Source: Leucoraja erinacea
Lineage: Eukaryota
Assembly (NCBI RefSeq): GCF_028641065.1
Contig: NW_026575913.1
Coordinates: 62,001 to 126,000 of the forward strand
Direction of reading: 5' to 3'
Length of the DNA stretch: 64,000 nt
The translations under genes were made by a program, and so were the position numbers. Each line of letters opens with the position of its first letter. The stretch's first letter is position 1. The notes below the pieces were generated by a model. The model searched no databases. It was given only the letters and a program-made list of their open reading frames with translations, and was not told the DNA's origin. This document shows positions 24,236 through 61,002 of this stretch, one piece after another.

Positions 24236-24239
24236 GCTA

Positions 24240-40489: not shown

Positions 40490-41028
40490 CTTCTGTGCAC
40501 TGCGGTAGAGTTGCTGCCTTATGCCCCTGTCCCACTTAGCAAACCTGAACGGAAACCTCTGGAGACTTTGCGCCCCACCCAATGTTTCCGTGCGGTTCCA
40601 GGAGGTTTTTGTCAGTCTCCCTTCCTGCTTCCACTACCTGCAACCTCCGGCAATCACCTGCAACCTCCGGGAACCGCACGGAAACCTTGGGTGGGGCGCA
40701 AAGTTTCCAGAGGTTTCCGTTCAGGTTTCCTAAGTCGGACAGGGGCATTACAGTGCTTGCAGCACCGGAGACCTAGGTTCGATCCCGACTACTGATGCTG
40801 TCTGTACAGAGTTTGTACGTTCTCCCCGTGACCGCGTGTGTTTTCTCGAAGATCTAAGGTTTCCTCCCACACTCCAAAGACGTACAGGTATGTAGGTTAA
40901 TTGGCATGGTGTGTGTGTGTGTGTGTGTGTAGGATAGTGTTAATATGCGGGGATCGCTGGTCAGCGCAGACTCGATGGGCCAAAGGGCCTATTTCGTCAC
41001 TGTATCTCTAAATTAAACTAAACAAAAC
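40490..41028 (+). mobile_element. tRNA-derived SINE (HE1-like) interrupted by a MITE
   Basis: Head gcggtagagttgctgcctta|..|cag, B box ggttcgatccc, core, (TG)n and a ctaaattaaactaa tail. Confidence 0.8.
40522..40747. mobile_element. PIF/Harbinger-type MITE, 226 bp, long TIRs, TTA target-site duplication
   Basis: tta|tgcccctgtcccactta ... taagtcggacaggggca|tta. Most of the element is an inverted repeat. Confidence 0.88.
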
Positions 41029-41455
41029 TAGTAAATGTAAAACTGCAACCAATCTGCCTCGTAGCTGACTTTGATTATGAACAGTGCGAGCCCCCAACAG
41101 AGCAGCACAGTGTCACAACTCGGCTTCAATTTTGACCTCGAGTGCCATCTATGTGGAGTTTGCACGTTCTCCGTGTAACCGCATTGGATCGCTCCAGGGG
41201 CTCCGGCTTCCTCATACATCCCAAGACGTGTCAGTTGATAGTTTAATTGGCCATTGTAAATTGCCCCTCGTGGGTGTGTGACTGGATGAGAAGGTGCAAT
41301 GAGATAGAATTCATGAAAGCAGGTGGTTGGTGGTTGGCATGGACTCGGTGGGCCGAATGGACTGCTTGCATGCTGTACTTTTCAATGATATCTCTAGGAT
41401 TTGGTGCAGTGAATCCATAATGTCTACCTATTTATTTTACACTGAATTCACAATT

Positions 41456-41463
41456 TCAAATAT
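41456..41463 (-). CDS. Candidate terminal coding exon of the MHC class I-like gene (adds D-I-stop)
   Basis: Pyrimidine-rich acceptor tttttgctgttgctaaatgtttctgatattcag|AT ATT TGA, with AATAAA 20 bp downstream (41431-41436). Other downstream acceptors cannot be excluded. Confidence 0.35.
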
Positions 41464-41625
41464 CTGAATATCAGAAACATTTAGCAACAGCAAAAAGGCT
41501 AGTTGACAGTGGTGACAATTGTGGCATTTCATGTGTAGCTGCTGCCTTATCCTACTTGAGATTGATCATTTCTTCAATTCCAATACCTTTACTAGCAACA
41601 GTTTGTCACAATGTTTCCATCTTAC

Positions 41626-41733
41626 CTCTCCTGTTTTTTCTCCACCAAACAATTACTGCCAAGCCAATAGCCAGCGATATCAGCACACACACGGCAATAA
41701 GGCCAATGTGCCTGTCTTTCTTCCCATTTCCTT
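41626..41733 (-). CDS. MHC class I-like gene: connecting peptide/transmembrane exon (EGNGKKDRHIGLIAVCVLISLAIGLAVIVWWRKNRR)
   Basis: Acceptor ttttcag at 41734 and donor G|gtaaga at 41625; 108 nt, phase 1-1. About 22 hydrophobic residues are followed by a basic stop-transfer stretch. It joins alpha3 in frame (IIW-E-GNG). Confidence 0.8.
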
Positions 41734-43077
41734 CTGAAAAATAAGAATGCATAATTTTACAAATCAATTGTTAAGCTGTGCAGCTAAATAGATTGGCACT
41801 GTCTGAAGACTTCAGGGTGAAGAAGGGTCTCGACCCAAAATGCCACCTATTCCTTTTCTCCAGAGATGCTACCTGACCAATGAGTTACTCCAGCATTTTG
41901 TGTCTATCTTTGGCGCATTTCAAGGTATATAAAATGATATGGTGTTTTGAATGACAGAGTTCTGCAGCATAGCAAAGGGACAATATATGTTCTGTACAAC
42001 TCTATGATCTATGGCACCATCACAGCCACATCTTAATTCAAGAAAGAAGGCGAATTGAAAGCAGATAGATACTGGCTTTAGCCCTATATAATCTAACATC
42101 TGTTTTGGGGAAAATGCTGGATTTCTTTCAATAATGGCAGAACATTTAAGTAATAACAAAACAATAAAGTGCATTAACAGGAAAATTGTAGAACAAGATG
42201 CAGGTACTGATTTACACAAAAGGTTTAGTTTAGTTTATTGTCACGTGTACTGAGGTACAGTGAAACGCTTTTGTTACGTGCCAACCAGTCAGTAGAAAGA
42301 CAATACATGATAGATACAAAATGCTGGAATAATTCAGCGGCACAGGCAGCATCTCTGGCGAACATGGACTCAGTCAGAAGGAGCGTGACCCGAAACATCA
42401 CGTATTCCTTTTCTCCAGAGATGCTGCCTGACCAGCTGAGTTATTCCAGAAATTTGTGTCCATCTTCGGTGTAAACCAGCATTTGCAGTTTCTTTTTACA
42501 TATGGACAGGTTACGTTTCGTTTTGGGGCCCTTCTTCAAACTTTGTTTATGAAATTGATTATGAACTTTATGCAACAGGAACCTGTAGACAATGTATATT
42601 CAAGCAGCAGTAGTTTGCAGGTGTGCACAGCCTAAAATTCAAAAACAAAATGATGGAAAAGCAGAATAGATAACAAAATTGGAATGAGAAACAACAGAAA
42701 TACAATATATTGTAGAGATCCAAACGTCATGAACAAATCAATTTTTTTTAAAGAAATATAGTTTTGGCACACGCGTGTTTAGTAAGGACTTGAGCAAAGT
42801 TCCTGCCGTTGTAATCGGGCACACCAGTTGACTGACGACTGACTCATCACCAACTCCCACCAAAACCCTGTCATGTGATAGTCCCAGCTCCCCTGACGAG
42901 GATTCTACCAATAAGTGACCTGACCACCAGATATCGCCACAATATCAGGATTTTCATAAGATATCTGATCAAGTGATGCAAAGGCTTTTGACATTTGGGG
43001 TAATAATTAGCATGAAAGGAAAAAACAATTCAGAGCAAGCAGAGAGTTGTCTTAATGTTGGCCTTCATAACAATAGT

Positions 43078-43615
43078 ATTTCAGTATAGGAGTAAAGAGG
43101 TTCTTCTGCAGTTGTATAGTGCTCTGGTGAGACCACATCTGGAGTAGTGTGTGCAGTTTTGGTCTCCTAATTTGAGGAAGGACATCCTTGCGATTGAAGC
43201 AGTGCAGCGTAGGTTCACGAGATTGATCCCTGGAATGGCAGGACTGTCATATGAGGAAAGATTAAAAAGACTATGCTTGTATTCACTGGAGTTTAGAAGG
43301 ATGAGGGGGATCTTATAGAAACATATAAAATTATAAAAAGGACTGGACAAGCTAGATGCAGGAAAAATGTTCCCAATGTTGGGCGAATCCAGAACCAGGG
43401 GTCACAGTCTTGGAATAAAGGGGAGGTCATTTAAGACTGAGGTGAGAAAAAACTTTTTCACCCAGAGAGTTGTGAATTTGTGGAATTCCCTGCCACAGAG
43501 GGCAGTGGAGGCCAAGTCACTGGATGGTTTTAAGAGTGAGTTAGATAGAGCTCTAGGGGCTAGTGGAGTCAAGGGATATGGGGAGAAGGCAGGCACGGGT
43601 TATTGATAGCCATGA
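43078..43615 (+). mobile_element. CR1 3' fragment (CTATGTTT family)
   Basis: RPHLE.CVQFWSP and FFTQRVVNLWNSLP, followed by the 3' UTR. Confidence 0.85.
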
Positions 43616-43694
43616 TCACTATGAATGAGAAACAAAAGAAATACAATATATTGTAGAGACCCAAACGTCATGAACAATCATGAACAAATCATAT

Positions 43695-43930
43695 ATTTAA
43701 GAGGGAGTTAGATGTGGCCCTTGCGGCTAAAGGGATCAGGGGATATGGAGAGAAGGCAGGTACGGGATACTGAGTTGGTTGATCAGCCATGATCATATTG
43801 AATGGCGGTGCAGGCTCAAAGGGCCGAATGGCCTACTCCTGCACCTATTTTCTATGTATCTATGAATGGTGGTGCTGGCTCGAAGGGCCGAATGGCCTCC
43901 TCCTCAACCTATTTTCTATGTCTCTATATT
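43695..43930 (+). mobile_element. CR1 3' UTR fragment with duplicated end
   Basis: gagagaaggcaggtacggg...gggccgaatggcctactcctgcacctattttctatg, with the final segment repeated. Confidence 0.75.
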
Positions 43931-45861
43931 TCTAAAAGAGTGTTCAGGTTGGGAAACTGTAACTGCAGGTTGGGAATCAATGCAACTACTTATTGTTGGT
44001 ATTAAGAGCAGATGAAGGGACAGATGGCGCTGTAGCCTAGATTGCTCATAATACATAGATAGGTTGGAAATTAAGTTCTGGAGTATGTCAACAGTCTTCA
44101 GAGTGAAACATCAGATTCCTTAGTTGTGCATTGTTCGAGGGGATCTTCAAAAGTGAGCATTTGTGTAGGTTAGTGCAGCATACCTGGAATCAAACTAGTA
44201 CAGTCGCTGTTTGTCAGGCAGTTATATTTTTCGTTGCAGAAACTGTAACTTGCGTCACAGAACTTACTTTCTTAGGTTTTGTTTTATTAATGCCAGATGT
44301 TTCAAGATACAGTGTAAAGGTTTGTTTTAAATGCTGTCCAAACTAATTAGATAATACTATACATTAATACAAACTCAAAAACAATAGAGCAAAGAGGAGG
44401 ATACAGAGTACAGAATATAGTTCTCAACATTGTAACATATCAGTCCCATAGACAATGTTTGATGTGCAATGAGGTTGAGGTGAATTAAACTAAATTTTAC
44501 TTCGGAGTCACGTGAGTGACTACGTGAAGAACCCCGCCAGGACGCATGCGTGTCATATCGCTACACGTATTGCAACGAGTCACAGCAGGGGGAACGACGT
44601 TCCCTTAGCGGCAAAATTTGAAAACCGGGAACAGCAGGTGAGAAGACTCTGCGTTCCTTCCACTTACCTTTCAGGTGGAGACATGGACCAGATCCACGAC
44701 GGCTGCGGAAAAGCTGGCGGGGGAGAATCATGGAGTTGCGGGCAGCCAGCGGCAGCAGCCAAAGGCACGCCAATCTCCCGTAATGGGAACAGCTGTGCCC
44801 GACTTTGCTCCCAACTTCACTCCCACACCGGCCAAGCCGGGCGGGAGAGCGAAGCAAAAACTAACAGGGTCGTTGACTCCGAGGAGTCCGACTCTGAATA
44901 GCCGCGAGCGGCCAGTGCCCGTGAGCATTGGAACAGTTGGAGCGGCTGCAGGAACTGGAGCAGGAGCAGCCTCAGGAGTAGCGGCTTCAGGAGCAGCACC
45001 GACAGCCAGTGACCATGTGCATTGGAGCCGGTTGGGTGCCCAAGAGCATCGGAGCCAGCTGGAGCAGCTGTGGGAGCAGGTAAGTGGCAGGCTCCAGGAG
45101 ATGGAGACTAGTCACAGGGGGCAGCTAGTAAGTCCTACAGCAGTACCTCTTGTAGGGCTGCACAGTGTCTCCCTCATCAGAGGGGAGTATAGGGGGTGAA
45201 TTCTGGGCTGAACCTGAACAGGGGTGCAGAACATACCCCTAGTGCACATGGGGTGCAGAAAACCTATTGGAAGACACTTACCATCAGGGAACTGCAAAAC
45301 ACTGAATGTTCCCAGTATAAACCAGTGTATTTGAAAACATGGCAGGGCAGGTACTTGAAATGAAAGAAAGTTCCAAAAGTCCTAACAGCGGGTATTACGG
45401 GTTTCGCCCGCACAATAAACAAAAAAGACATGACACTGGATCACGAGGATGCACTGGCCTTATTTTGCAAATTACCAATACGGGTAAACAGCATTAGGAA
45501 GAAGTACCATCCAACCGGCTTTAGACCCTAATTTGCAGGCCTATGCAAACCTGGAACCTCCATACCACCAATATTAAAATTTGGAGGCAACTTATCTAAA
45601 CAGGTAAAGAACTTGACATAGAGGGAAACCCTGGGGCTCATTAAAGCAACGTCTAAAAACTACTTCCTGGGGAATGCGCTAACCCTCAACACAGACCCAA
45701 CTACAGAAACCTACTTATAGTAACCATGGAGGAAGAAGTATAGGGTTATACCATAGAATTATTCAAAACATAACCTTCCAGTTCAGCATGTACCGAACTG
45801 AATGTTCATGCTTACAGGCAAAGAAATAATCAAAAGCGTTTACTGAACTACAGTGCCCAAA

Positions 45862-46295
45862 TATAACCATATAATAACCATATAACAATTACAGCACGGA
45901 AACAGGCCATCTCGACGCTTCTAGTCCGTGCCGAACACATAATCTCCCCTAGTCCCATATACCTGCGCTCAGACCATAACCCTCCATTCCCTTCCCATCC
46001 ATATAACTATCCAATTTATTTTTAAATGATAAAAACGAACCTGCCTCCACCACCTTCACTGGAAGCTCATTCCACACAGCTACCACTCTCTGAGTAAAGA
46101 AGTTCCCCCTCATGTTACCCCTAAACTTCAGTCCCTTAATTCTCATGTCATGTCCCCTTGTTTGCATCTTCCCTACTCTCAGTGGGAAAAGCTTTTCCAC
46201 GTCAACTCTGTCTATCCCTCTCATCATTTTAAAAACCTCTATCAAGTCCCCCCTTAACCTTCTGCGCTCCAAAGAATAAAGCCCTAACTTGTTCG
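45862..46295 (-). mobile_element. CR1 3' fragment nested in the DIRS RT region
   Basis: ORF 45949-46272 and an (aaccatat)n tail; nearly identical to the 3' end at ~20011-20440. Confidence 0.92.
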
Positions 46296-48556
46296 AATAA
46301 AAGGACTAATGCAGGACATCCAACACGAATCACAGGATTTGTGTCCAAAATCTTTATCATAAAATAGATGGTGGTTGCCACATCATCATAGAGTTGACTA
46401 ATTTGAATACTTTCGTACTTTATATTCATTACTAGATGGGAACCTTTGTTACTGCAAAGGTATTGATCCTAGGTTACTACATGGCAAGCATCGTATTAAA
46501 AAATGCTTACTATACAGTACCCATTAGAGGTGACCACAGATGTATTTAACACAATGGATCATCTGCGGTTTCACTCTTAACTCAGCTCACATGTCAGTGA
46601 CTTTGCCGTAAGAAAAGGTTACAGCCTTAATGAAGGCTTGCAGTAAACTAAACCATCCATCAGACTGGTAGTAGAATGATTGGCATTATAGTGGCTGTGT
46701 TCCAGCCACATAAATCGGACCTTTACATTATCAAATTACTGAGCGCAAACATGCGTGCACTCAAAAATTATGGGGGTCATTCTGACAGACCAAAGAAGCT
46801 ACCAACAGAGGCCACCATGGTACTAAAATGGTGGAAACATAACATTAGGCATTGTTCCAATCCAAACATTAACAGCTACCCGTCTATGGAACTACATACT
46901 GATGGGCACTTGGATGGGATGCTACCAATTCCATCTCCAGCTGTGGGGAAGATGGAATGCACAGGAGGCATCATCACAAAAGTTGGGCATAACTCCCTGG
47001 GAAAGTTGAGTGCATTCCATGGCTTTAAGTCATATTGTTCTGGGTTATATCACCAGTATGTTAGACTACTAATTGACTACACCACCGTGGTAGCATATGT
47101 CAACCATATGGGTGGAAACATATCGACATCATGTGACTATCAGGTCAACACAATTTGGCAATAATATATCCAGAAAGATATTTGGATATCAGCTACCAAA
47201 TTACCAGGTAAACTGAATTTAGTGGCAGACAACAGGTCACGCTAAGTCTATGAAAACACTGTATGGATGTTGGGGAAAGTATTGCTGGAATTACAGCATG
47301 GTATGGAACACCAGATAACGACCTATTCACATCCATGCTCACACCAGTTATCAAATTAGGTTCTTGGGAACCAGAACCTGGGGCAGTGGCTACTGATGCA
47401 TTTTCGCTGAATTGGGGGATTATTTATGCATTCCCTCCTTTTTGCCTCATCAGTCGGGTATTTAGGAATAAACAGTAGACTGGTATTTTGATAGTACCCG
47501 ATTGACCTACTCAACCATGGGTCCCGGTGATATCGACATGGTTTTAGAACCATGCATCACCATCCATCATAGACCTAATTTACTGGTTCTTCCCACAACA
47601 AGGGGAGTTACCCATATCACAATTATATAAACATATTAATTTATAGAGTTGAAAGCACCTCTACTACACCTGGGACTGACGGACCAAACAGTGGGATTTC
47701 AACGGGCCACAGACAGTCCACCAAAACAAACAATACTTGGTGTCATCAAGAAATGGGAAGTACTGTCACAACAATAAACATCACCCACAGATCTATGAAC
47801 ATCCCGTCTCTTCTGGAATTCCTGGCAAGCCTCCATTACGATGAGAGGCTCAGTCATAGTGCCATCAACTGCGCCAGAAGTGCTCTGTCAACATACCCGT
47901 GGCAAGGAACAGAGCGGCATTCTGTTGGGACACACCCTGGTAACCAAACACATGAGGGGCATTTTAATATTAATCCCCCAAGAACCAGGTACTCCCAAAT
48001 ATGGGATGTGAGCATTGTACTGACCATGTTAAGAAACTGGTCTCCAGCTACAGCTCTGTCCCTACAGAAAATGACTATGAAAGCAGTCATGCTGATGGCC
48101 TTGGCCACGGCACAAAGGGTCCGGTCACTACAGAAACAAAGGTTGGACAACATGATTATTTCATCTGGAAATTTAACTTTTCACATTAATGAAATAGTCA
48201 AACAGAACAGACAGGGGTCAGCAGGCCTAAAATCAGAATTCAGGTCCTACCCGACAGATGGTCGTCTCTGTATTGTAACACACTTGCTATTATATATGGA
48301 ATATACTAAGATCATCAGAGGGAAGAAATGTCACTTTAATCAGCTACAAACAGCCACTCAAAACAGTGACAATCCAGACCATCTCTAGATGGCTAAAACA
48401 GGTCCTAATAAAGGCTGGAGTAGACACTAGCATTTTTAAATCTCACTCCACCAGGGCTGCAGCTACATTGGCAGCTATGACGTTGGGCGTTCCTATGGAC
48501 CAAATCCACAAGACAGCAGGATGGTCAACGGAGGAAACTTTCCAATGACTTGGAAT

Positions 48557-49214
48557 TGGAATCTCATGTAGATAGGGTGGTAAAGAAAGCTTTTGGTGTG
48601 CTGCCCTTTATAAATCAGAGCATTGAGTATAGAAGTTGGGATGTAATGTTAAAATAGTACAAGGCATTGGTGAGGCCAATTTTGGAGTATGGTGTACAAT
48701 TTTGGTCGCCTAGTTATAGGAAGGATGTCAACAAAATAGAGAGTACAGAGGAGATTTACTAGAATGTTGCCTGGGTTTCAGCAACTAAGTTACAGAGAAA
48801 GGTTGAACAAGTTAGGGCTTTATTCTTTGGAGCGCAGAAGGTTAAGGGGGGACTTGATAGAGGTATTTAAAATGATGAGAGGGATAGACAGAGTTGAGTA
48901 GGGAAGATTCAAACAAGGGGACATGACTTGTGAATTAAGGGATAGAAGGTTAGGGGTAACATGAGGGGGAACTTCTTTACTCAGAGAGTGGTGGCTGTGT
49001 GGAATGAGCTTCCAGTGAAAGTGGTGGAGGCAGGTTCGTTTTTATCATTTAAAAATAAATTGGATAGTTATATGGACGGGAAAGGTATGGAGGGTTATGG
49101 TCTGAACGCAGGTGTATGGGACTAGGGGAGAATACATGTTCGGCACAGACTTGAAGGGTCGAGATGGCCTGTTTCCGTGCTGTAAATGTTATATGGTTGT
49201 ATGGTTATATGGTT
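48557..49214 (+). mobile_element. CR1 3' fragment nested at the end of the DIRS recombinase
   Basis: RT C-terminus and atatggtt tail, inserted between ...ETFQ and YNNPVI. Confidence 0.92.
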
Positions 49215-49764
49215 TATAACAATCCAGTCATTGAACCTGGAATATTTGCAGAAACAAATTTAAGTTCTGTAATATAATTTACCCCATAAATAGGGGCAAT
49301 AATTGGTGTTAATATTTTTATCGTTGGGTTTCAATATCGTATTGATGTCTAATGATGTTAACTCTATTCTCCCCATAATCAAGGCAGATGTGATGCTTGG
49401 ACTCGTTTCCACGGCATGAAATCACAGAGCTTTAAAATCTTCACGTAGTCACTCACGTGACTCCGAAGTAAAATAATAAGATTAAATGAGAACTTACCAG
49501 TGTGAAGTTTGATCGTTATTTTATGAGGAGTAAAGTTGAGGGAATACGTGCCCTCCGCTCCCACCCTTGATCATATACTCAACTGGTATCTCTTCTCTAA
49601 TCTTACTATGTTTAGTCATTACAGTTATCTGTGATTTCACACCGCTGCTTTGAAGAATGACATGCATGCGTCCTGGCGGGGTTCTTCACGTATTCCCTCA
49701 ACGTTACTCCTCATAAAAAACGATTAAACTTCAAACTGGTAAGTTCTTGTTTAATCTTACTATT

Positions 49765-50245
49765 AAACCTACATTATGGAAGGACCCTTCCGAAGCCTGA
49801 TAACAGAAGGGTGTCCCCGAGTCTGGCAGTGCGTATTTTCAACTTTCTGTACCTATTGCCTGATGGGAGCAGGAAGGAGGAATGACCAGGGTGGGATAAG
49901 TCTTGTTTTCCAAGGCAACCTGGTGTAGATTGAGTCAATAGTAGGAAGTCTGGGCTGTGTGATGATCCTTAACTCTTCGTTTATTCTTGCAGTCTTGGGC
50001 AGTGCAGTTCCTAAATCAAGATATGATGCAACCCAACAACATGCATTCTCTAGCGGCATCTATAGATGTTTGCAAGAGTCATGATGAATATTCTCAGTCT
50101 CCTGAGGAAGTAGAGGTGTTGGTGTGCCTCCTTGTCTATGTGGTCAGTCCATGACAGTATATTGGATATATTCATGCCAAGGAACACAAATCTCTCAACC
50201 ATTTCCACTTTGGACCATTGATTCGGATTGGGGCATTGGGGCAAT
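49765..50245 (-). mobile_element. Rex1/Babar-like LINE remnant; its 3' tail continues at ~44340-44490 on the other side of the DIRS element
   Basis: FVFLGMNISNILSWTDHI..AHQHLYFLRRLR motif, and the two flanks of the DIRS element read as one continuous repeat. Confidence 0.6.
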
Positions 50246-50890
50246 AAAACATTCCTCCACTTTGATGACCTCGAAAAGATCATCCACATTTATCTCCTCC
50301 CGCCTAGATTACTGCAACTCTTACACTGGCATCAGCCAATCTTCCCTGTCCCGCCTGCAACTGGTCCAAAACGCTGCAGCGAGACTCCTGACGGGCACCC
50401 GAAAAAGGGACCACATCACCCCGATCTGGCCTCTCTCCACTGGCTCCCTGTGTGGTTCTGTATACATTTCAAGACCCTCCTCTATGTCAACAAAGCTATC
50501 AATGGGCTTGCCCCCTCCTACATTAAAAGTCTTCTCACCCACCACTCCACCTCCAGGTCCCTCAGATCAGCCGACTTGGGCTGCTGAATATCCCGCGGTC
50601 TAGGCATAAGCTCAGGGGCGACCGCGCCTTTGTGGTTGCAGCTCCTAGACTGTGGAACAGCATCCCTCTTCCCATTAGAACTGCCCCCTCCATCGACTCC
50701 TTTAAGTCAAGACTAAAAACCTATCTATACTACCAAGCCTTTCCTGACGTCCACTAAGCGAGGGCTATATGTATATTTGTATGTAGTTTGTTTTTGTTTA
50801 TACTATTCTTATAACAAATGTAAAGCACTTTGGCCAACGAGATTTGTTTTTTAAATGTGCCAAATAAATAAATGTGACTTGATTTGACAC
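50245..50890 (+). mobile_element. L2 LINE 3' fragment
   Basis: FISSRLDYCNS, LQLVQNAAARLLTG and LHWLPV, with a 3' tail aataaataaatgtgacttgatttgac. Confidence 0.9.
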
Positions 50891-51233
50891 TTGACATGTA
50901 CTCCCCCAGTGCCTTGCTGTTAATCACATCATGAGGAAAGATTCATTTTTTTTATTTAAACATACCTTTCATGGATTTCAGTTTCACCACTGAGAACCCC
51001 AAATACTCCTTCCTTGTATATTAGTTATTTATTTATTTACTTTTGATACATTTTCTGTTGACAAAGTCTTCTGCTCATGTGGAGAGTGGGAGTCTGATTA
51101 CGTGATTGCTTAGAGCAACACCACGAAACAAAGACAGTTTACGCATCTTGGAACATGGGATGTAGTCACAATTATTAAAATGGAAACAACAGAAGATAAT
51201 GATTATCTATGAAAGAATATTTAACATTCTCAC

Positions 51234-51500
51234 CCCAGATGATAGTCTTCCCACCGGGCAGGCTGCTGTGATCAACATGACAGGAATACTGTTTCCCATC
51301 ATACGGATCATACACAAGGACAGACTTGAGATGATATGTTCCATCGTTGTTGGGTATGACCCCAGAAGATTTGGTCTCAAAGACATGGTGACCATTCTGC
51401 AACCAGCTGACATTGATGGCCGGTGGGTAAAATGCAAACACAGTGCAGTACAGGGTTGAATGATCATCAGTGCGGGCAGCGAGTGTGACCTCAGGTGAAA
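51234..51500 (-). CDS. MHC class I-like gene: alpha3 (Ig C1-set) exon
   Basis: Acceptor tcttgcag|TT TCA CCT GAG and donor TGG G|gtgaga; 267 nt, phase 1-1. Translation VSPEVTL...LYCTVFAFYPPAINVSWLQNG...PNNDGTYH...YSCHVDHSSL...IIW has the C1 hallmarks (C, FYP, W, DGTY, YxC, HSSL). Confidence 0.93.
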
Positions 51501-51539
51501 CTGCAAGACAGTGAGATGGTTATTTTCACCTTCAGTAAA

Positions 51540-52015
51540 ACTTGCACAGTCACCCACCTCAAACTATTCTTCAGTCTACTACAACAACCAGGTTACTGTC
51601 TACATCTGCCCCATTTTGTCTCTTTCGTCACCATCAACTAACCACGTGGTTTAAAAGGGATCGCACGCTCCCTGTTAAGATAGTACACAAGAGTTTGAAA
51701 GCTCGTACCATTAAATTCAGGAACAGCTTCTTCCCCACTTTATTTGGACTACTGAATGATTCTCATGTAAGATAAGGTGTTGTCCTGATCTTCCAACCAA
51801 TCTCATTGTGATCCTTGCAACTCATTTTGATCTGCACTATCTCTGTAACTGTAATGCTATGATATTGTAATTCTGCTCTCTGAATAGTTTTCTCTTTGCC
51901 CTGTTCTACTTGTGGATTGCTTGATTGCACATGTGTAGTATGATCTGATTGGATAACACAGACAAACTTTAGACTATATCTCAGTTCACGTAACAATAAT
52001 ATACTAATACCAACG
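51540..52015 (+). mobile_element. Rex1-like LINE 3' remnant
   Basis: KARTIKFRNSFFP motif followed by the family 3' UTR. Confidence 0.55.
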
Positions 52016-52769
52016 GCAAATCTTTTCACATCGGGCAAATAATTGACAAGTTACGAAATGAGGGTCAATTGGGGAGGGGACAAGCATAAAATTGACAATA
52101 TTTCACTCCTCGTCAATAAGAGATAAAAGGGGCCAGTCATTTGTTTACAAAATCTATTTTTGCAGAGTGTGGTCATTCTCTGGCACTCTTGACCCCAGAG
52201 ATTTGTGAAGACAAAATCATTGGAAGTATTTAATGTGGCAGTAGTTAAACTTTTGAAAGATTTGAGAATTTAGTTCAATGAGGAACTGACACCGAACAGG
52301 AGTTGATGCCTGAGGAACATCAGCCATGGTCATACTGAATGGTGGGCAGGTTTGAGGACCAAATGGCTTACTCGGAAACTTGATAATCAAGGAGAAAATC
52401 AGGCTTCTGAATGATCATTCCATAAGCTAGGGTTCTGTCCAATTGACCACTACCCCATTGCAGACAGTGGACTTTGTTTATGGAACTATGTAGGAAGTAA
52501 CTGTAGATGCTGGTTTAAACCGCAGATAGACACAACATGCTAGAGTAACTCAACGTGTCAGGCAGCATCTCTGGAGAGAAGGAATGTGTCACGTTTCATG
52601 TCAAAACCCTTCTCTAATGGGCTGCATTGCTGAGAACTATATGCTGCACTCTGTAACTTCCCTTTTGCTCTACCTACAGTACCTGAGTTTGACTTGATTA
52701 TATATATGTATGTTGTTATCTCATCCAATTGGATAGCATGCAAAACAAAGTGTTACACTGTAGCTCAGT

Positions 52770-53062
52770 ACATGGGCAGCACAGTAGCGCAGCGGGAAAG
52801 TTGCTGCCTTACAGTACCACAGACCCAAGTTCAATCTTGACAATGGGTGCTGTCTATATTGAGTTCACACATTCTACCTGTGACCATGTGAGTTATCTCC
52901 GGCTGCTCCACTTCCGTCACATTCAAAGACGCCCAGGTTTGTACATTTTTTGGCTTCATTGTCCCTAGTGTGTAGGATAGAACTAATGTTTGGGTGGTCG
53001 TTAGTCAGCACAGATTCAGTGGGCCAAAAGGCCTGTTTCCATGCTGTACCTCTAAACTAAAG
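52770..53062 (+). mobile_element. tRNA-derived SINE (HE1-like)
   Basis: Head ggcagcacagtagcgcagcgg..ttgctgccttacag, core, and tail ggcctgtttccatgctgtacctctaaactaa. Confidence 0.8.
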
Positions 53063-53987
53063 GTGACAATAATAAATCTACACTTTACCCTGTGCCTATC
53101 TGTAGATTAGTGTCACTCATACTGTGGTTCCGCCCACATGCTTATTAGAGCGCTCTCTCTCTCTCTCTGTCTCTCTCTCTCTGGTAGACTGAGAAGAAAG
53201 CACCTTGTGTTTCTCTGCATAGTTACTAATAATAGACTATGGATTCTACCCACTATGTGTGAGTTTGGTCATTCTTCCAACACTATCTCTTGTGTTGTTA
53301 TGTCTCTGGAACTAAGTGGTAGCTGCGCTTAACTGTTGTAGCATAACTGTTTATGTTGAACAATTCATGAAAAAAGTCTAAAAAGGATAAAAAAACAAGT
53401 GATTCCAGAATGTTGTAAGATAATTGGGGCTGATACGTAATGGGGTGGCACTGCGGCACAGTTCCAGTGACGAGGGTTTGATCGCAATCTTGAAAGAAAA
53501 ACTTAAACTGAGGCAGGCTCCTCTACTTCATCAATCCAGTTATGACACTCAAGTCAAGTCAAATCACATTTATTTATATAGCACATATAAAACCAACTCT
53601 TGTTGGCCAAAGTGCTTCACATTTGTTATAAGAATAGTATAAACAAACAAACTACATACATCTTATATATTACTAAAAGTCTGATCTTGACCGCTTTTGA
53701 CCCACTGTGCTGCGATTCTCTGAGAGAACGCCGCAACCTACGCCCGTCATTTATGGCCACCTCGCCTTCTAGGAGCAGAGGATTTTTCCCATCGATGAAA
53801 AATGGGAGAGATATTAATGTTTTTACAAAATTCTCCATTCTCTCTGCTGCCCCTGCTGGCGGCAGGTGGAGGGACTATAAAACCCGGAAGTGTCGCACCT
53901 CACTCTGTGTCTGCCACACCCAGGATGGCAGAGGGTCACGGCTCTCTGAGCTGCGAATCTACCCCACGGTGAGTCCCCACGATGTGC

Positions 53988-54775
53988 TTTTCAGCAAACG
54001 GATGTGTTTTTAGCGGCTTGCTTGCTTGCTCAGTGTTTTTTTTACCTAATTGCTGGGCATTTTTTATATTGCTTTTCAGCCAACGGATGTGTTATTTGTC
54101 GGCTTGCTTGCTTGCTCAGTCTTTTTTTTCCCCAATTGCTTGGCATTTTTTAAATTGCTCTTCAGCGAACGGATGTGTTTTTTGTCGGCTTGCTTGCTTG
54201 CTCAGTCTTTTTTGCCCCCAATTGCTTGGATTTTTTAAAATTACTTTTCAGCGAGGGGATGTGTTTTTGGTCGGGTTGCTTGCTTGCTTGCTCAGTGTAT
54301 TTTTTCACCAATTGCCTGGCATTTTATAAATTGCTTTTCAGCGAACGGATGTGTTTTTTGTCGATTTGCTTGCTTGCTCAGTGTTTTTTTTCCCCAATTC
54401 CTTCGCATTTTTTTAATTGCTTTTCAGCGACGGATGAGTTTTTTGTTGGCTTGCCTGTTTGCTCAGTTTTTTTTTCCGTGGGGGGAGGGACTATAAAACC
54501 TGGAAGTGCCGTGCCTCACTCAGTCTCTGCCAGACATAGGAAGCGAGAGGGTCACGGCTCTCTGAGCTGCGAAGCACATCTACACGGTGAGTCCCCTCGA
54601 TGTACTTTTCAGCGAACGGATGTGTTTTTGTCGTCTTGCTTGCTTGCTCAGTGTTTTTTTTCCCGCAATTGCTTGGCATTTTTTAAATTGCTTTTCAGCG
54701 AGTGGATGTGGTCTTTGTCGGCTTGCCTGATTGCTCAGTGTTTTTTTCCCCCAATTGCTTGGCTTTTTAAAGGGC
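53988..54775 (+). repeat. ~86-bp minisatellite (about 6 + 2 units) inside the Helitron-like element
   Basis: Unit ttttcagcgaacggatgtg..gtcggcttgcttgcttgctcagt..cccaattgcttggcatttt..aaattgc; the cagc anchor falls at 53992, 54077, 54163, 54249, 54339, 54425, 54610 and 54696. Confidence 0.92.
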
Positions 54776-55175
54776 TTGCGTACAACAGTTTTCGGATGGA
54801 TAAAGTGAATAAACATTGTATTAGATCAGAACTGTGTTTAATTTCAAAATTGGCACGTATTCTTTGATTTTCGCTAGGTTGCAAGATGGCATAATTTCCA
54901 GTTAGCGGCATGTTGGCGATTAGTGCATAATTTCCGCTTCGTGGCGAGCAGCGAGAGTGTGACGTCAAGATGGCGGCAAGTGCAGGTGCTGTTAAATAAT
55001 TCATTAATTTACTGCTCTGTCTATGGTGAGTGTGTTTGTTTGACGCTATTAAAAGCATGATTTTGCTTCAGCAGCAGCCTCCACAGCAGGCTTTAAAGAT
55101 TTGTTTTACACACTGTATATTCAACACGTTCTGAATGTACTTGTCATTTTAGAATTGGAGTTTGTGTGTATTAAT

Positions 55176-55439
55176 NNNNNNNNNNNNNNNNNNNNNNNNN
55201 NNNNNNNNNNNNNNNNNNNNNNNNNNNNNNNNNNNNNNNNNNNNNNNNNNNNNNNNNNNNNNNNNNNNNNNNNNNNNNNNNNNNNNNNNNNNNNNNNNNN
55301 NNNNNNNNNNNNNNNNNNNNNNNNNNNNNNNNNNNNNNNNNNNNNNNNNNNNNNNNNNNNNNNNNNNNNNNNNNNNNNNNNNNNNNNNNNNNNNNNNNNN
55401 NNNNNNNNNNNNNNNNNNNNNNNNNNNNNNNNNNNNNNN
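55176..55439. other. Assembly gap (264 N) adjacent to TG-rich repeats
   Basis: Run of N. Confidence 1.
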
Positions 55440-56129
55440 ATGTGTGTGTGAATGAGTCTGTGTGTGTGTGTGAATGAGTCTGTGTGTGCGTGTGATCAAC
55501 AAATAGCACAGATAATATAGTCTTTCATAGTTCAGAGCTTATTTGTTATGTTCAATAGCTTGATGGCTGTCAGGAAGAAGCTTTTCTTCAATGTAGATGT
55601 TACAGTTTTCAGTTTACAAAAGTCAGTCGTGACTCCAGAAGTCGGGCATCAGTCAGTCCACAAGCCGTGAGAGTCAGTCAGTCCAAAGGCCATGAGTTCA
55701 TCCCAAGGCAGTGAGTGAGTCCAGAGGTCATGAGTAAGTCGTTCACTGCCCACCCCCCCCCCCCTCTCCACTGACACCCCCCACCTCAAGACTCTGCCCT
55801 CCGCCTGGCTATAGGATGCGCACTCCCCTGCACCCTACTGAAGCCGCCCACATCCCCTGCTGGGTCACCTAGCTGTACTGCCAGGCCTCAGTGACTGAGC
55901 TGCCAGCCCAAGAATCCATCCGGCCCACAATGTCAATACTAGCCCTCTGGTAACCAGTCACATCAGCGCACCACCCCCATAATTGTGCTTCAGAAAGCCC
56001 CACCCCCCACTGACACTGGCGAGCAATATTGGAATTGGTGGAGAGGTGGAATATTGCATTGGGTGACCAGCCCTCCCGTGTGATGCTGGGACCCAATGAG
56101 TCCCACTTAGTCTAGTATATGCATATAGC

Positions 56130-57330
56130 CCTCGCCTAGTGGACGTCAGGAAAGGCTTGGGAGTATAGATAAGATTTTAGTCTTGACTTAAAGGAGTCGA
56201 TGGAGGGGGCAGTTCTGATGGGAAGGGGGATGCTGTTCCACAGCTAGGAGCTGCAACCGCAAAGGTGCGGTCGCCCCTAAGCTTATGCCAAGACCCGGGG
56301 CAGGGCCTTACATCGCCCGACGTGGCTTTAAATGGTTGCAGACTTGCTAGCGCCCACTGGAGGCTTTGACCTTGGGAGAGGAATGGAGAGCAGGAGAGAG
56401 ACAAGACTTTGCCTTCCATCACATTGAGGAGGAGATTCACTGTGACGGATTTTGTGTAAATTGTGTTGGTGTGTGCCTTGGTTCTTTTCTTGTATGGCTG
56501 CAGAAACCAAATTTCATTTGAACTTCATGTGAGGTTCAAATGACAAATAAACGGTATTGTATTGTGTTGTATTGTATTGTATATTCAGCAGTCCCAAGTC
56601 GGCCGATCTGACGGACCTGGAGGTGGAGTGGTGAGCGAGAAGACTTTTAATGTAGGAGGGAGCAAGCCCATTGCGGGCTTTGTAGACATAGAGGAGGGTC
56701 TTGAAATGTATACGGAACCGCACAGGGAGCCAGTGGAGAGAGGCCAGGATCGGGGTGATGTGGTCCCTTTTTCGGAGGCGGGACAGGGAAGATTGGCTGA
56801 TGCCAGTGTAAAGAGAGTTGCAGTAATCTAGGCGGGAGGAGATAAATGTGTGGATGATCTTTTCGAGGTCATCAAAGTGGAGGAATTGTTTTATTTTAGC
56901 TATCGTCCGAAGCTGGAATAAGCTAGCTTTTACCACGGCATTGACTTGTTTGTCAAATTTCAATGCGGAGTCAAATATCACGCCAAGGTTTTTGACGTGA
57001 GGTTAGAGTAGTGGGGTAAGGCTTCCAAGGCTACCTACTATCATTTTGATTTAGTCCGAGGGGCCGAGAAGGATGACCTCAGACTTACTCTCATTTAGTT
57101 GGAGGAAGTTCTGGGCCACCCAGCACTTTTTATCCTCGAGGCAGCGGGTAAGGTTAAGCAGATTTGATTGGTTTTTGGCTTCAGGGGGAGATAGAGTTGT
57201 GTATCGTCTGCGTAGCAATGGAAGGAAATGCCGTGCCTTTGAATAACTTGGCCTAAGGGGAGAATATACAGGGAAAAGAGAATGGGGCCAAGGATGAAAC
57301 CTTGTAGAACCCCACAGCAGAAACTAGCTG
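56130..57330 (-). mobile_element. L2 LINE fragment (same family as 50245-50890, inverted), with a ~280-bp LINE-tail insertion at ~56301-56580
   Basis: ORFs 57095-57439 and 56514-56981 give [21 protein letters not shown] and FISSRLDYCNS. Confidence 0.9.
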
Positions 57331-58544
57331 GGCCTGAACATGAGAAAATGAGAAATTGGGTATTTCCTTGGGGCAAAATCAGACTTTTCAGAGACTTGGA
57401 AGCTGCAAGACAGTCCTGGAATATGGTGGATCTCTGCAAGCTGTTCCAGAAGAGGATGTATTGTACTTATGTACAGTGTGACTTGACTGGAGAGAATGCA
57501 GAACAACCATTTCACTGCAGATAGACACAAAAAGCTGAAGTGACACAGCGGGACGGGCAGCATCTCTGGAGAGAAGGGATGGGGTGTCCAGTATCTGCTG
57601 TTACATCCAAACCATTTCACTGCGTCTCTGCATGCACAAAACAGTTATATAAAATGCAGCACATACTGCAGTACTCATGTATGTCAGGCTGTCGTGATTT
57701 TGCAGGTGGATAACTTAACTGTAATTTTTTTTTAAAACACAAAAAATCATGTAGGTGTAACTCAGTGGCTTTGGCAGCATCTGGAAGACATGGTTACGTA
57801 ATGTTTCAGCTTGGGATCCTGCTTCATACTTCTTGCATCTGTTCTTTCTGACTTAACACTTGAAATGACCAGTTCATTTATCGACCGGGAATGCAACTTG
57901 TTGAATGTGAAATTGAGTTTGAAAGGCTGCAACATGTCCAGACAGAAGCTGATTTGTTGCTCCTCAAGGTTACTTTCACCCTTGTTATTATAGTGTAAGA
58001 GATACAGATGGATGGATCATGGTGGGGGTCGAATTGAGAATTAAAGTGGCAGGAATTAGGAATTTTAGAAATTCCCATGGATTGAATGCAGGTTCTCCAG
58101 AAAACAGCCACTCACTTTGTTTCATTGATGCAATGTGGAAGATTACATCATGAAAACCAAGTGCAGTAGATTTGAATGGAAGTGCAAGTGTTTCACGCTG
58201 TTTAGCTTTGAAGAAGTACCTGGGTCTATGGACAGTGGGAAGGGAAGAGGTAAATGGATAGATGTTGCATGCACCAAGACAGGAAAGTAGAGGAAAGTAG
58301 TGGGGATAGTAGACAGACCAGGGAGTGAAAAGGGAATGACTAGTTCAAAATATAGAATGGGGAGCAGAGCAGGAGGGGAGGGAGAAATGGATTGACTAAT
58401 TGAATCAGATTTAAACTGGGATGAAGTACTCAACATGGAGGCTGGAAGAGTGGAAAAACGTATCCCTGCCCGGTCCAATGAGAATATATAGAACATAGAC
58501 CAGTACAGCACAAGAACAGGACTTTCAGCCAGGTTAAACTAAGG

Positions 58545-58838
58545 CAACACATTGGCACAGTGATAGAGTGGATGTCTAACAGCATTATAGATCCGGGTAC
58601 GATCCTGACTAGAGTGCTGTCTGGACGGAGTTTTTACGTTCTCTCTCTGTCACTCTGTGGGTTTTCTCTGGGGGCTCCGGTTTCCTCCCAAATACAAAAG
58701 ACATGCAGGTTAATTGGCTTCTGTAAATTGTCCCTAGCTTGTAGGACGGAAATAGTGAATGGGCAATTGCTGGTCAGTGCAGACTCAGTGGCCCAAAGGT
58801 CCTGTTTCCATACTCTATCTCTAAACTAAACCAAAACT
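58545..58838 (+). mobile_element. tRNA-derived SINE (HE1-like)
   Basis: Head cacattggcacagtgatagag, B-box-like ggtacgatcc, and tail tctctaaactaaac. Confidence 0.7.
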
Positions 58839-59164
58839 AATCTCCACAGCCTGCATGTGGTCCATATCATTGTATTTGCTGCATATCCACAAGCCTGTCC
58901 AAAACTTTCTTAAGCACCAGTATCATGTCCCTCTCTACCACCACTCCTGGTTGCACATTCTAAGTATCAAGCACACTGTGCAAAAAAACACTTGATGCGC
59001 ACATCTCGTGTAAATGTTGCCCTTCGAAGCTTAACGCAGTGCTCTATAGATCTGTGTGATAGACATGCAATCCCATTAGGGGCTGTCAACTGTGGTCAAG
59101 TAAGTCCATGGTTAACTAATATGAAAGACATCAATGACACTTTCTCCCTGTCAGACAGGGATGA

Positions 59165-59735
59165 GGTGCCGGTCAAGCCACATTTGGAGCATTGTGAGCA
59201 ATTGTGGGCACCATATCTGAGGAAGGATGTGCTGGCCCTGGAGAGGGTCCAGAGGAGGTGTACAAGAATGATCCCAGGAATGAGTGGGTTAACATATGAT
59301 GAGCATTTGATGGTAGTGGACATGTACTCGCTGGAGTTTAGAAGAATAAGGGTGAACCTCATTGAATCATACCAAATGGTGAAAAGGTTTGGATAGAGTG
59401 GATGTGGAGAGGATGTTTCCAATGGTGGGATAGTCTACGACTAGACGTCACAGTCTCAATATTAAAGGACAATCCTTGAGGAAGGAGTTAATGAGGAATT
59501 AATTTTGTTTGAGGGTGGTGAGTCTGTGGAATTATTTGCCACAGAAGGCTTTATAGTCTATCAATGGATATTTCTAAGGCATAGAAAGATTCTTGATTAG
59601 TATGCACGTCAGGGGTTATGGGGAGAAGGCAAGAGAATGGGGTTAGGAGGGAGAGATAGATCAGCCACGATTGAATGGCGAAGTAGACTTGATGGGCCGA
59701 ATGTTCTAATACTGCACCCATCACTAGTGACCTTA
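59165..59735 (+). mobile_element. CR1 3' fragment, older
   Basis: KPHLEHCEQLWAPYLRKDV...LEFRR followed by the 3' UTR. Confidence 0.8.
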
Positions 59736-60048
59736 TGACTCAGTTGGCTTCCTCCATGTGCTCCAGTTTCATCCCATATACCAAAGACGTGCCAGTGAAT
59801 TAGTTGGACATTGCAAATTATCCGTAGTGGAGCTGAATGAAAGGAGAATCCGAGGGAGCAGAGTGCAAGGTGTGAGAGAGAGCTGTGGAGCAGTTTGTCG
59901 ACATTTCATTGAAAATTAGCATCGACTCAATGGGCCGAATTACCTTTCACTCTGTCATGATTGGGTCAGAGATAATATTACTCATTGCCTCAGAGTGATA
60001 TATTACTCATTGCTTACCATCGCAAAACAACACTTTTTCAGAACTCAC

Positions 60049-60324
60049 CTTTTCTGGTCAGGTATGTCTTTCCAATTGCATAGTATGTACGCCAATAATC
60101 CACACAGTCATGTTCTAACAAGCTCTTGAAATAACGGTTCATTTTTTCATTCTTGTCCCATTTCTCTTTGAAGGGTTCAGCTATTGGATCATGCACCGTC
60201 CACTTTAGTTTGTCCTTGTCGAAACTAAATGCATATCTTCCGTCAAAAGCCAACTTCAATATCCCTACATTGGGACTGTGATCGTTCACCTGACAACCAA
60301 ACTGACCTTGAGTATAGTGATATT
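60049..60324 (-). CDS. MHC class I-like gene: alpha2 domain exon
   Basis: Acceptor ttctttcag|AA TAT CAC and donor AAA G|gtgagt; 276 nt (the canonical class I alpha2 exon size), phase 1-1. It has HxxQxxFGC, AFDG, W133, KW147, C101-C164 pair, Y171 and G175, and joins alpha3 as LTRK-V-SPEV. Confidence 0.93.
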
Positions 60325-60479
60325 CTGAAAGAAAAACAAAATCATTATTTGATTTATTGTTAAGACTGGGTAATTTCTGATCTCCAGGGTCCAAGTCATT
60401 TCTATATGTCACAAGTAGCAAGGGTCACAGCACAGGTCCCTGCAGAACTCTACTTGTCACTGAACTACAGCCTGAATAT

Positions 60480-61002
60480 TTGACCTTCCGTGCAACTGTA
60501 GAGACCATATTATTGTACGGGTGTGAGGCATGGACTCTCACTCCAGCACTGTCCAAGTCTCTCGATGGTACCTACACCCGAATGCTCAGAAAAACTCAAA
60601 TTGACAGTTGCAGGCACGGCAAGGCAAGGCAAGTTTATTTGTATAGCACCTTTCAACAAGGTAATTCAAAGTGCTTTACATAAAACATTAAAACCACATC
60701 ATCAACTCTATGGCGAGACTCCACCTCTGACCGAGAAGATCACGTTGAGAAGGATGATGTGGTTCCGCCACCTTGAAATGGCAGTAAAAAAGGTTGTGCT
60801 GTGGGAACCCACCCATGGAAGACTTGACCCAGGACGGCCAATCAAGATGATGTTTGATGGAAGACGCATGTGTATAGTAGATAAGAGGAGCTTGCCAGCT
60901 GCATGGAGGACAGAGGAGGGATGTGACCTTCACCATGCCGGTTGTAAACCAGCACCACTGCCTCACTAATGTTTTCAACAATTATTATTATTATTATTAT
61001 TA
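60480..61002 (+). mobile_element. RTE-clade LINE fragment with (ATT)n tail, interrupted by a short L2-type tail (~60610-60690)
   Basis: FRATVETILLYGCEAWTL..LDGTYTRMLR and LWEPTHG...GRP are RTE ORF C-terminal motifs. Confidence 0.7.

Follow-up and report, generated by a model that had tools for sequence, protein, structure and literature searches.

A probable little skate orthologue of the nonclassical MHC class I gene UGA: transcript-backed exon map and comparison with related systems

Gene structure and transcripts

The DNA analyzed here (the window, 64,000 nt) belongs to Leucoraja erinacea scaffold JAMYXN010000161.1 (GCA_028641065.1) and is identical to it at every base except in N runs. 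Its minus strand carries the last four of the six exons of an MHC class I heavy-chain gene: 5' UTR plus leader, alpha1, alpha2, alpha3, connecting peptide/transmembrane (TM), and tail plus 3' UTR (Table 1). Every coding junction is phase 1, with the codon split after its first base. The introns are 21.9, 18.4, 8.5, 9.5, and 4.8 kb long, for a transcription unit of at least 66 kb. The unplaced scaffold is just 250 kb long, and the neighbors within the window are GPR139-like genes. Queries with sister-lineage and classical-type sequences (both discussed below) found no other class I gene either in the window or across the 118.6 kb locus, which holds one gene of this type (UGA, as named below).

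Table 1. Features of the skate gene within the window, in order of transcription.
Feature	Position	Strand	Remarks
Intron 2 (alpha1-alpha2), 3' part	60325..64000	-	18.4 kb in total, remainder right of the window
alpha2 exon, 276 nt, phase 1	60324-60049	-	acceptor ...TTTTTCTTTCAG, donor GTGAGT
Intron 3, 8,548 nt as written	51501..60048	-	holds N run, tandem array, and dispersed repeats; transcripts join 60049 to 51500
alpha3 exon, 267 nt, phase 1, Ig C1-set	51500-51234	-	acceptor ...CTGTCTTGCAG, donor GTGAGA
Intron 4, 9,500 nt	41734..51233	-	transcript junctions; LINE 3'-end copies and other repeats
Connecting-peptide/TM exon, 108 nt, phase 1	41733-41626	-	acceptor ...TTATTTTTCAG, donor GTAAGA
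Intron 5, 4,779 nt	36847..41625	-	transcript junctions
Last coding segment: G/AT = D, then YQNIQPNQNVPC, TAA	36846-36806	-	acceptor ...TTTCCCTCCTCAG; in transcripts L001, L003, and L004
3' UTR of last exon, at least 2 kb (transcript extent implies ~350 nt more)	34806..36805	-	L003 alignment

A sequence-only reading of the window had recognized the alpha2, alpha3, and TM exons as phase-1 minus-strand exons of a class I gene with one domain per exon, and their positions are borne out both by AG/GT splice sites and by three transcript contigs. They join in frame as ...LTRK-V-SPEV... and ...IIW-E-GNGKK...WWRKNRR. One residue needs correcting: alpha2 opens with the split codon A/AA, encoding K, whose first base is supplied by the alpha1 exon; an E is seen there when the ORF is read through the acceptor. 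The span originally proposed, 41626-60324, is right as to its exons, but its left end is not that of the gene, since a coding exon with the stop codon and the 3' UTR beyond it had been missed. Much of this UTR is contained in transcript L003, of which nt 1064-3106 form an unbroken alignment with 36848-34806 (99.7%); minus-strand AATAAA/ATTAAA signals follow at 34572 and 34311.

The alpha1 and leader exons had been expected to the right of 64000. Transcript mapping places them there, on the same scaffold, alpha1 ~14.7 kb (L001 maps to L002 31960-32220) and exon 1, with the leader, ~36.8 kb beyond the window edge (L002 9751-10073). In agreement with that reading, searching 60325-64000 by tblastn with the full-length sequences of three lineage proteins detected neither, and residues 1-110 of P0001 had no tblastn match anywhere in the window. 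Scanning for promoter motifs upstream of exon 1 detected no ISRE or NF-kB sites; ATTGG and TATATA are present, but uninformative.

Three independent transcript contigs (from SRA runs SRR13269316, SRR11241640, and SRR13269358) have all five junctions in common, joining the exons exactly as proposed. Their identity to the alpha2, alpha3, and TM exons is 98-100%, with one contig at 100% throughout, and the matches switch exactly at the exon boundaries; L001, for example, matches alpha2 (L001 585-860), alpha3, and TM (L001 1127-1235) at 100%. The coding sequence spliced from the genome is the L001 ORF, without interruption, and each of the three contigs codes for an intact protein of 334 aa. The gene is transcribed and correctly spliced. 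Nor is it hidden, as the sequence-only reading had it: it is annotated in RefSeq as LOC129716032, of which isoform X6 (XP_055521885.1, 341 aa) has exactly the same junctions, and the alpha2 exon is 100% identical to XP_055521884.1 and XP_055521885.1. Of the six RefSeq isoforms, the other five are probably chimeras that read through into the neighboring downstream GPCR gene.

The introns are rich in repeats. Intron 3 includes an 86-nt tandem array (53985-54768) and a 22-nt tandem repeat (55441-55495) that adjoins an N run; multi-copy blocks are found in intron 4 at 43055-43938, 45860-46298, and 48545-49214. Of the part of the gene that lies in the window, at least 27% recurs elsewhere in the 118.6 kb locus. 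Several short intronic ORFs have no Pfam match, and are considered repeats because of their copy number and similarity to a LINE with RVT_1.

Very large repeat-rich introns, an N run, a short unplaced scaffold, and a truncated second copy on another scaffold might together suggest a gene fragment or pseudogene, or an assembly in which different loci were misjoined at the N run. This is extremely improbable. The N run (55176-55439) falls within the intron between alpha2 and alpha3, and all three transcripts, each with an intact ORF, splice directly across it; both sides must therefore be parts of a single transcription unit, ordered and oriented as they stand, with no exon hidden between them and no bearing on the reading frame. 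In the public scaffold the flanks of the run are colinear, with the same 264-base spacing. Exon order over this intron is the same in the second copy, in which the flanks are colinear but more widely separated, and intact orthologues are found in more than 15 species.

This second, divergent copy, on scaffold 384, has introns 96-98% identical to those described here; it is truncated, and could be either allelic or paralogous. Eight of the 13 codons that vary between the two copies differ nonsynonymously, several of them in the alpha2 helix, and the little skate transcripts are mosaics of the two. In another skate, Rhinoraja longicauda, there are at least seven near-identical 334-aa products not labeled as isoforms.

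Lineage assignment

The encoded product (341 aa, or 334 aa from the second Met) is a type I membrane glycoprotein with a conserved N-glycosylation site and both domain disulphides. Residues 26-199 of the skate protein (P0170) match Pfam MHC_I over the alpha1-alpha2 superdomain (E 4.5e-21), as does the alpha2 exon alone (E 7.4e-13, profile positions 93-178 of 179), and the alpha3 exon matches C1-set (E 6.1e-18); all are far beyond chance. The alpha2 exon encodes the two cysteines of its domain disulphide (C101-C164 equivalents), and C122, C185, C222, and C277 are invariant in 18/18 lineage sequences. The TM exon ends in the basic anchor RKNRR.

In a PDB search, the top match to the skate protein was 9ch4_A (E 1.3e-114), without gaps across 266 residues (27-292, alpha1-alpha3). 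Taken singly, the alpha2 exon matches 9ch4_A residues 90-179 (E 1.3e-34), and the alpha3 exon residues 182-268 (E 2e-33). The entry is titled "Crystal structure of shark nonclassical MHC CLASS I, UGA", and the name UGA is used here solely on the strength of that title, database sequence names never being of the UAA-UGA type. A literature search for "9CH4" returned unrelated matches only, and in the supplement to PMC10751288 the genes are labeled merely "MHC-Ib". Further down the PDB results are bovine MR1 (3.5e-48) and nurse shark classical UAA (6LUP, 9e-42), the latter ranking below both chicken BF2 and MR1.

Profile searches showed a sharply bounded family: its members, all elasmobranch, have E values of 1e-160 or less, and the next match is at 5e-71. 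They come from skates, sawfish, stingrays, mantas, and eight shark orders or families; the search found none in chimaeras. The orthogroup of the skate protein is likewise confined to elasmobranchs among the sequences searched, and the gene tree agrees with the species tree, with 100% support for batoids and for skates. The gapless match to 9CH4, the elasmobranch-only orthogroup, and the species-like gene tree therefore point to orthology with UGA. From these sequence comparisons, the exons probably represent the little skate member (we would say at roughly 85%) of the UGA lineage of nonclassical (class Ib) genes in sharks and rays. The gene is thus already known: it is annotated in RefSeq, and belongs to a lineage that has a solved shark structure and is covered in recent reviews. 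The sequence-only reading had implied novelty, adding that nesting inside a known lineage would remove it; UGA was absent from the lineages it named, and the novelty is accordingly gone. Its assignment to a nonclassical elasmobranch gene was sound.

NCBI names for these proteins are generic (e.g., "F10 alpha chain-like"), so that another named class Ib lineage (UFA, UDA, or UBA) might be considered. It is a very improbable source, however: the gapless match is to a chain deposited as UGA, the one other close lineage has just 36% identity, and chimaeras yielded no member. UDA is reported in chimaeras; UEA is not known from rays. A classical, peptide-presenting class Ia gene (UAA) would account for the full set of class I domains and for some allelic or paralogous variation in the alpha2 helix, but nurse shark UAA is no closer to the skate protein than are bird and mammal class I chains, and three class Ia residues (T143, Y159, and Y123) are missing. 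Classical-type ray sequences (P0215, P0216), just 31-33% identical to the skate protein, do retain T143 and Y159, and their tail is long and Ser-rich. The class Ia reading can be set aside with near certainty, leaving UGA as the preferred assignment.

All elasmobranch class Ib genes are placed in the MHC by the literature. In Mobula and Hemitrygon, the UGA orthologue and classical-type class I genes are on one chromosome.

Groove, tail, and possible ligand

When positions are assigned from the BF2 alignment, the UGA lineage retains five to six of the nine peptide-end residues: Y7, Y59, K146, W147, and Y171, with R84 as the sixth in skates. The position of T143 is F, L, or M in 17/18 sequences, that of Y159 is L in all 18, and that of Y123 is A, I, or V; position 84 varies (R/Q/K/E), with R84 in skates only. 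In the skate protein, the changes T143 to F, Y159 to L, and Y123 to A, together with the unconserved position 84, suggest that the groove has lost part of the peptide-end clamp. Mapped by hand from alignments rather than from coordinates, it also appears to be lined with more hydrophobic side chains. Conservation between skate and shark proteins is 58% in alpha1, 65% in alpha2, and 58% in alpha3; the groove domains are thus as conserved as alpha3, which is what a fixed ligand would predict. AlphaFold gave a poor model (mean pLDDT 67, with the alpha1 helix below 50), so that the structural ranking drawn from it (matches to MHC-I, ZAG, and MR1) says nothing about likeness to CD1.

The cytoplasmic tail, D-YQNI-QPNQNVPC, has a YxxPhi motif (YQNI, window 36843-36832) directly after the membrane anchor, and a Y-x-x-[IV] tail motif is present in 13/18 lineage sequences. 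The same motif occurs in human CD1b (YQNI), with related ones in CD1c (YQDI) and CD1d (YQGV) (PMC5002281). UFA and UGA have been described as a pair of MHC-linked, CD1-like lineages, single or low copy, and their crystal structure and mass spectrometry, cited as a personal communication, suggest lipids like those of CD1d (PMC12562908).

By analogy with these systems, the heavy chain would pair with beta2-microglobulin, as class I chains generally do and as its fold suggests. The YQNI motif should drive adaptor-mediated internalization and endosomal recycling, as in CD1b, CD1c, and CD1d; in endosomes the protein might then load a conserved non-peptide ligand (a lipid, following the review's personal communication) and subsequently display it to T cells. 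A UGA-lineage molecule could instead hold a specialized conserved peptide or a small metabolite, in the manner of MR1. The best PDB matches outside the lineage, MR1 and chicken BF2, and the lineage-wide retention of Y7, Y59, K146, W147, and Y171 are in keeping with this, but K43, by which MR1 captures its ligands, is replaced in 18/18 members (A/T/L/I; A in the skate gene), hydrophobic residues take the place of T143, Y159, and Y123, the tail motif is CD1-like, and lipids are what the review reports for UFA/UGA. Such a ligand is improbable, and a lipid remains the preferred reading.

UFA and UGA bear on the age of lipid presentation in vertebrates, and clean batoid gene models are therefore useful. 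What is provided here is a transcript-backed exon map for skate UGA, including the CD1b-type YQNI tail exon beyond the span first reported. By itself the finding adds little; it may also hint at growth in UGA copy number in skates. That UGA in skates (Rajiformes) is perhaps no longer "single-copy, monomorphic", and that a CD1-like presenter might be diversifying there, is a speculative and rather unlikely extension.

Comparison with known class I systems

The nearest known system is shark UGA itself (PDB 9CH4, released 2026-03-18), whose similarity to the skate protein is at the level of orthologues. Both have F at 143, L at 159, an extra alpha1 cysteine, the N-glycosylation site, and both disulphides. 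The 9CH4 chain is from a shark, ~88% identical to that of the zebra shark, whereas the gene described here is from a batoid, with very long introns, and skates show signs of extra copies in place of the single- or low-copy UGA of the review.

CD1 is likewise class I-like, and pairs with beta2-microglobulin; a hydrophobic groove and lipid ligands are reported for UGA as well; the tail motif of CD1b is letter for letter that of skate UGA, in a similarly short cytoplasmic tail. CD1 lacks several class Ia groove residues that skate UGA keeps, and orthology is not demonstrable here. CD1 chains match the skate protein only through alpha3, and in sequence it more closely resembles MR1 and classical class I chains. 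Membership in CD1 was rejected, although the tail motif is CD1-like: alpha2 scores just 12.8 bits (E 0.089) with the CD1-type profile MHC_I_3, whose cut-off is 35, and scanning the full-length protein gave no match to it. That the shared YQNI is a trace of common ancestry rather than convergence is a speculative and rather unlikely reading.

MR1 is the best PDB match outside the lineage, and several of the orthologues are named "MR1-like" by NCBI. Identity is only about 30%, however, and the K43 that forms a Schiff base with MR1 ligands has no equivalent in the UGA lineage, on which ground MR1 membership was rejected.

A sister lineage (little skate XP_055486430.1, P0022), 36% identical, is found in the same sharks and rays as UGA and on the same contigs or chromosomes. 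Its top PDB match is again 9CH4 (3e-60), and the alpha1 motif LNHG..LPEYS...VPRQ.WMA is common to both. It differs from UGA in that 12 residues are inserted ahead of alpha3, the tail is longer and lacks a membrane-proximal YxxPhi motif, and Pfam MHC_I_3 (CD1-type) matches are regular. The sister lineage is putatively UFA, which would fit the pairing of UFA with UGA described in PMC12562908.

Exon structure and transcripts

From the sequence alone, three minus-strand exons of the window (alpha2, alpha3 and TM) had been proposed to splice in frame into a nonclassical MHC class I gene, an arrangement that the splice sites, Pfam matches and transcripts confirm. Each of the three open segments has a pyrimidine-rich tract and AG at one edge and GT at the other, and each splits its codons in the same way, with two completing bases at the start and one opening base at the end. 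The first codon of alpha2 is A/AA (K), not E, and the Pfam match of this exon is to the alpha2 half of MHC_I. The spliced reading is ...TYLTRK-V-SPEV...TIIW-E-GNGKKDRH...WWRKNRR.

Features of the class I locus (window positions unless stated otherwise)
Feature	Position	Strand	Details
Exon 1, 5'UTR + leader	36.8 kb right of window end		ends GCAG/GTAAGT
Alpha1 exon	14.7 kb right of window end		261 nt; AG acceptor, A/GTTAGT donor
Alpha2 exon	60324-60049	minus	276 nt; MHC_I E 7.4e-13, profile positions 93-178 of 179
Alpha3 exon	51500-51234	minus	267 nt; C1-set E 6.1e-18
TM exon	41733-41626	minus	108 nt; hydrophobic stretch, then basic anchor
Last exon	starts 36846	minus	acceptor ...CCTCCTCAG
RefSeq exon of X1-X5	~8131-8001	minus	AG acceptor, GTAAGT donor
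N runs	10306-10463; 55176-55439
7TM ORFs, intronless, rhodopsin-type	2296-3171; 16973-17956	minus; plus	7tm_1 E 3e-16, 3e-13
LINE copies, near full-length	20371-25978; 31250-32368	minus; plus	RVT_1 E 1e-32 to 1e-34; ORF1 with GDSL-esterase domain
86-nt tandem array	53985-54768		~6 + 2 copies, 85-87% matches
Cys-rich ORFs	36354-36647; 61679-62131	plus; minus	'FSC...IHC..C...YIGE' motif
Second little skate copy	10022-10073, 28186-28446, 54475-54750, 64492-64758		exons on scaffold JAMYXN010000384.1

A little skate transcript contig (L001) maps to the scaffold as six exons in all, with the alpha1 and leader exons lying beyond 64000, as the sequence-only reading had inferred. The last exon encodes D-YQNIQPNQNVPC, followed by a TAA ending at 36806 and a 3'UTR of at least 2 kb (the transcript aligned down to 34806). 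Spliced in silico, the six genomic exons reproduce the L001 ORF exactly. With introns of 21.9, 18.4, 8.5, 9.5 and 4.8 kb, the transcription unit spans at least 66 kb for a coding sequence of 1,026 nt; a promoter motif scan upstream of exon 1 was uninformative.

The introns were fairly described as transposon-filled: of the gene sequence inside the window, at least 27% recurs even when only the 118.6-kb locus is counted, whereas the exons do not recur. The repeats dispersed across the class I introns include 3' ends of a LINE whose RVT_1 and GDSL-type ORF1 are found in its fuller, near full-length copies in the window. The 86-nt array in the alpha2-alpha3 intron produces long spurious plus-strand ORFs. 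Two further ORFs share a Cys-rich motif that we take to be that of the GIY-YIG domains of Penelope-like elements; the minus-strand one had no match in a Pfam scan, and the plus-strand one is antisense within the 3'UTR of the class I gene.

The longer N run falls between the alpha2 and alpha3 exons and is therefore intronic. In all three transcript contigs, from three different sequencing runs (SRR13269316, SRR11241640, SRR13269358), 60049 is spliced straight to 51500. The flanks of the run are thus parts of a single transcription unit, ordered and oriented as in the window; the transcripts draw no exon from within the run, and it has no bearing on the reading frame. Its right flank is a 22-nt tandem repeat. 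In the public scaffold the flanks are colinear at the same 264-base spacing, with letters in place of N; in the second genomic copy they are colinear but wider apart. Both N runs of the window are non-N in the public scaffold stretch (L002), which has no N at all, so that they represent masks or a between-copy difference rather than gaps of the public record.

Annotation and probable read-through models

The gene had been called hidden, and its novelty implied; neither stands. Outside the N runs the window is identical to JAMYXN010000161.1 (GCA_028641065.1). A search of a 1.8-billion-protein library with the alpha2 exon found a 398-aa Leucoraja erinacea protein identical over all 91 residues, XP_055521884.1; this is isoform X5 of the gene LOC129716032, which is on an unplaced scaffold of 249,698 bp. 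Isoform X6 (XP_055521885.1, 341 aa, "class I histocompatibility antigen, F10 alpha chain-like") includes these three exons, joined precisely as proposed. The gene is thus already known, as an exact protein in RefSeq and as a member of the UGA lineage, which has a PDB structure and is treated in PMC10751288 and PMC12562908.

Isoforms X1-X5 instead splice the TM exon to the exon at ~8131-8001, which X1-X4 join to the GPR139-like coding exon (3171-2296) immediately upstream of the start codon. The three transcript contigs all lack this exon and have the tail exon at 36846 in its place. It is probably the 5'UTR exon of the GPCR, which would make X1-X5 chimeric read-through models. The two 7TM ORFs are 57% identical to each other, one (2296-3171) being XP_055521888.1, "probable G-protein coupled receptor 139", and form a small GPR139-like cluster adjoining the class Ib gene. 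MHC linkage in little skate was judged from this unplaced scaffold, on which the GPR139-like genes are the neighbours in the window.

The UGA lineage and its sister

Sequence similarity, distribution and tree all make this gene the UGA orthologue of little skate. In a PDB search, the best match to the full protein is 9ch4_A (E 1.3e-114, gapless over residues 27-292), followed by bovine MR1 (3.5e-48) and chicken BF2; 6LUP, the nurse shark classical Gici-UAA*01 (PMC8236899), reaches only 9e-42. A structure search gives the 9CH4 title as "Crystal structure of shark nonclassical MHC CLASS I, UGA" (released 2026-03-18), and a zebra shark orthologue is ~88% identical to its chain. With a mean pLDDT of 67, the AlphaFold model was too weak for the order of structural matches to be used beyond this entry title. 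A profile search built on 18 relatives has a sharp family edge, with members at E≤1e-160 and the next protein at 5e-71; members come exclusively from sharks, skates, rays or sawfish, with none from chimaeras. The maximum-likelihood tree tracks the species tree (batoids 100%, skates 100% support), with the window's protein beside Amblyraja. Literature searches for PDB code 9CH4 and for a primary UFA/UGA paper found none, and the supplement tables of PMC10751288 are without lineage names.

A sister lineage, represented in little skate by XP_055486430.1 (36% identical; best PDB match also 9CH4), occurs in sharks and rays on contigs or chromosomes shared with UGA; in Heptranchias both are on one 530-kb contig. 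Its members (P0022, the little skate protein, and relatives P0218-P0229) regularly match Pfam MHC_I_3 (CD1-type). The two lineages agree with the "UFA and UGA" described by a 2025 review (PMC12562908), and the sister lineage is probably UFA. From consecutive accession numbers, we take XP_055486430.1 to be the neighbour of a second little skate UGA copy.

This second copy is colinear with the first, its introns 96-98% identical with several indels. From leader to alpha3 there are 13 variable codons, eight of them nonsynonymous (e.g., Y188L and R190H in the alpha2 helix). The scaffold stops short of the TM exon, which is why RefSeq XP_055486429.1 reads through the alpha3 donor. Transcript contigs L003 and L004 are each a mosaic of both copies. 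The second copy could be either an allele or a paralogue. In Rhinoraja longicauda, at least seven different 334-aa UGA-type proteins (≥90% identity, no isoform label) are encoded on one 41.5-Mb chromosome, which looks like an expansion in a lineage said to be single or low copy.

Groove, tail and comparison with CD1

The protein has an intact leader, an N-glycosylation site equivalent to N86, both disulphides, and a 22-residue hydrophobic anchor followed by RKNRR and a 13-residue tail. An extra alpha1 Cys (residue 54 of the full-length protein, "LDGCEI", in an exon outside the window) is present in 16 of 18 lineage members and in the 9CH4 chain.

Groove residues were mapped through a chicken BF2 alignment and tabulated over the 18 lineage members. 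Y7, Y59, K146, W147 and Y171 are retained; the T143 position is F, L or M in 17, the Y159 position L in all, and the Y123 position A, I or V, while position 84 varies. With three to four of nine peptide-end residues lost and no special closeness to shark UAA, classical UAA was rejected. MR1 was likewise rejected, for want of K43: its Schiff-base lysine position is A, T, L or I. By this hand mapping, F, I, L or W would occupy several floor and helix sites where classical molecules have polar or aromatic residues. Between skate and shark, alpha1 (58%) and alpha2 (65%) are as conserved as alpha3 (58%), which suggests a fixed ligand.

Y-x-x-[IV] directly follows the anchor in 13 of the 18 tails. 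The product is most likely a beta2m-associated class Ib presenter that would recycle through endosomes via its tyrosine motif, be loaded there with a conserved hydrophobic ligand, and show it to T cells.

Functionally, the protein would resemble CD1. The skate tail motif, YQNI, has the same four letters as that of human CD1b (CD1c has YQDI and CD1d YQGV; PMC5002281), and for UFA and UGA a crystal structure and mass spectrometry suggest CD1d-like lipids (personal communication in PMC12562908). Skate UGA is like CD1 in tail motif and reported ligand class but is no CD1 in sequence: its score with the CD1-type Pfam model is subthreshold and only alpha3 aligns with CD1 chains, and membership in CD1 itself was rejected on these grounds.
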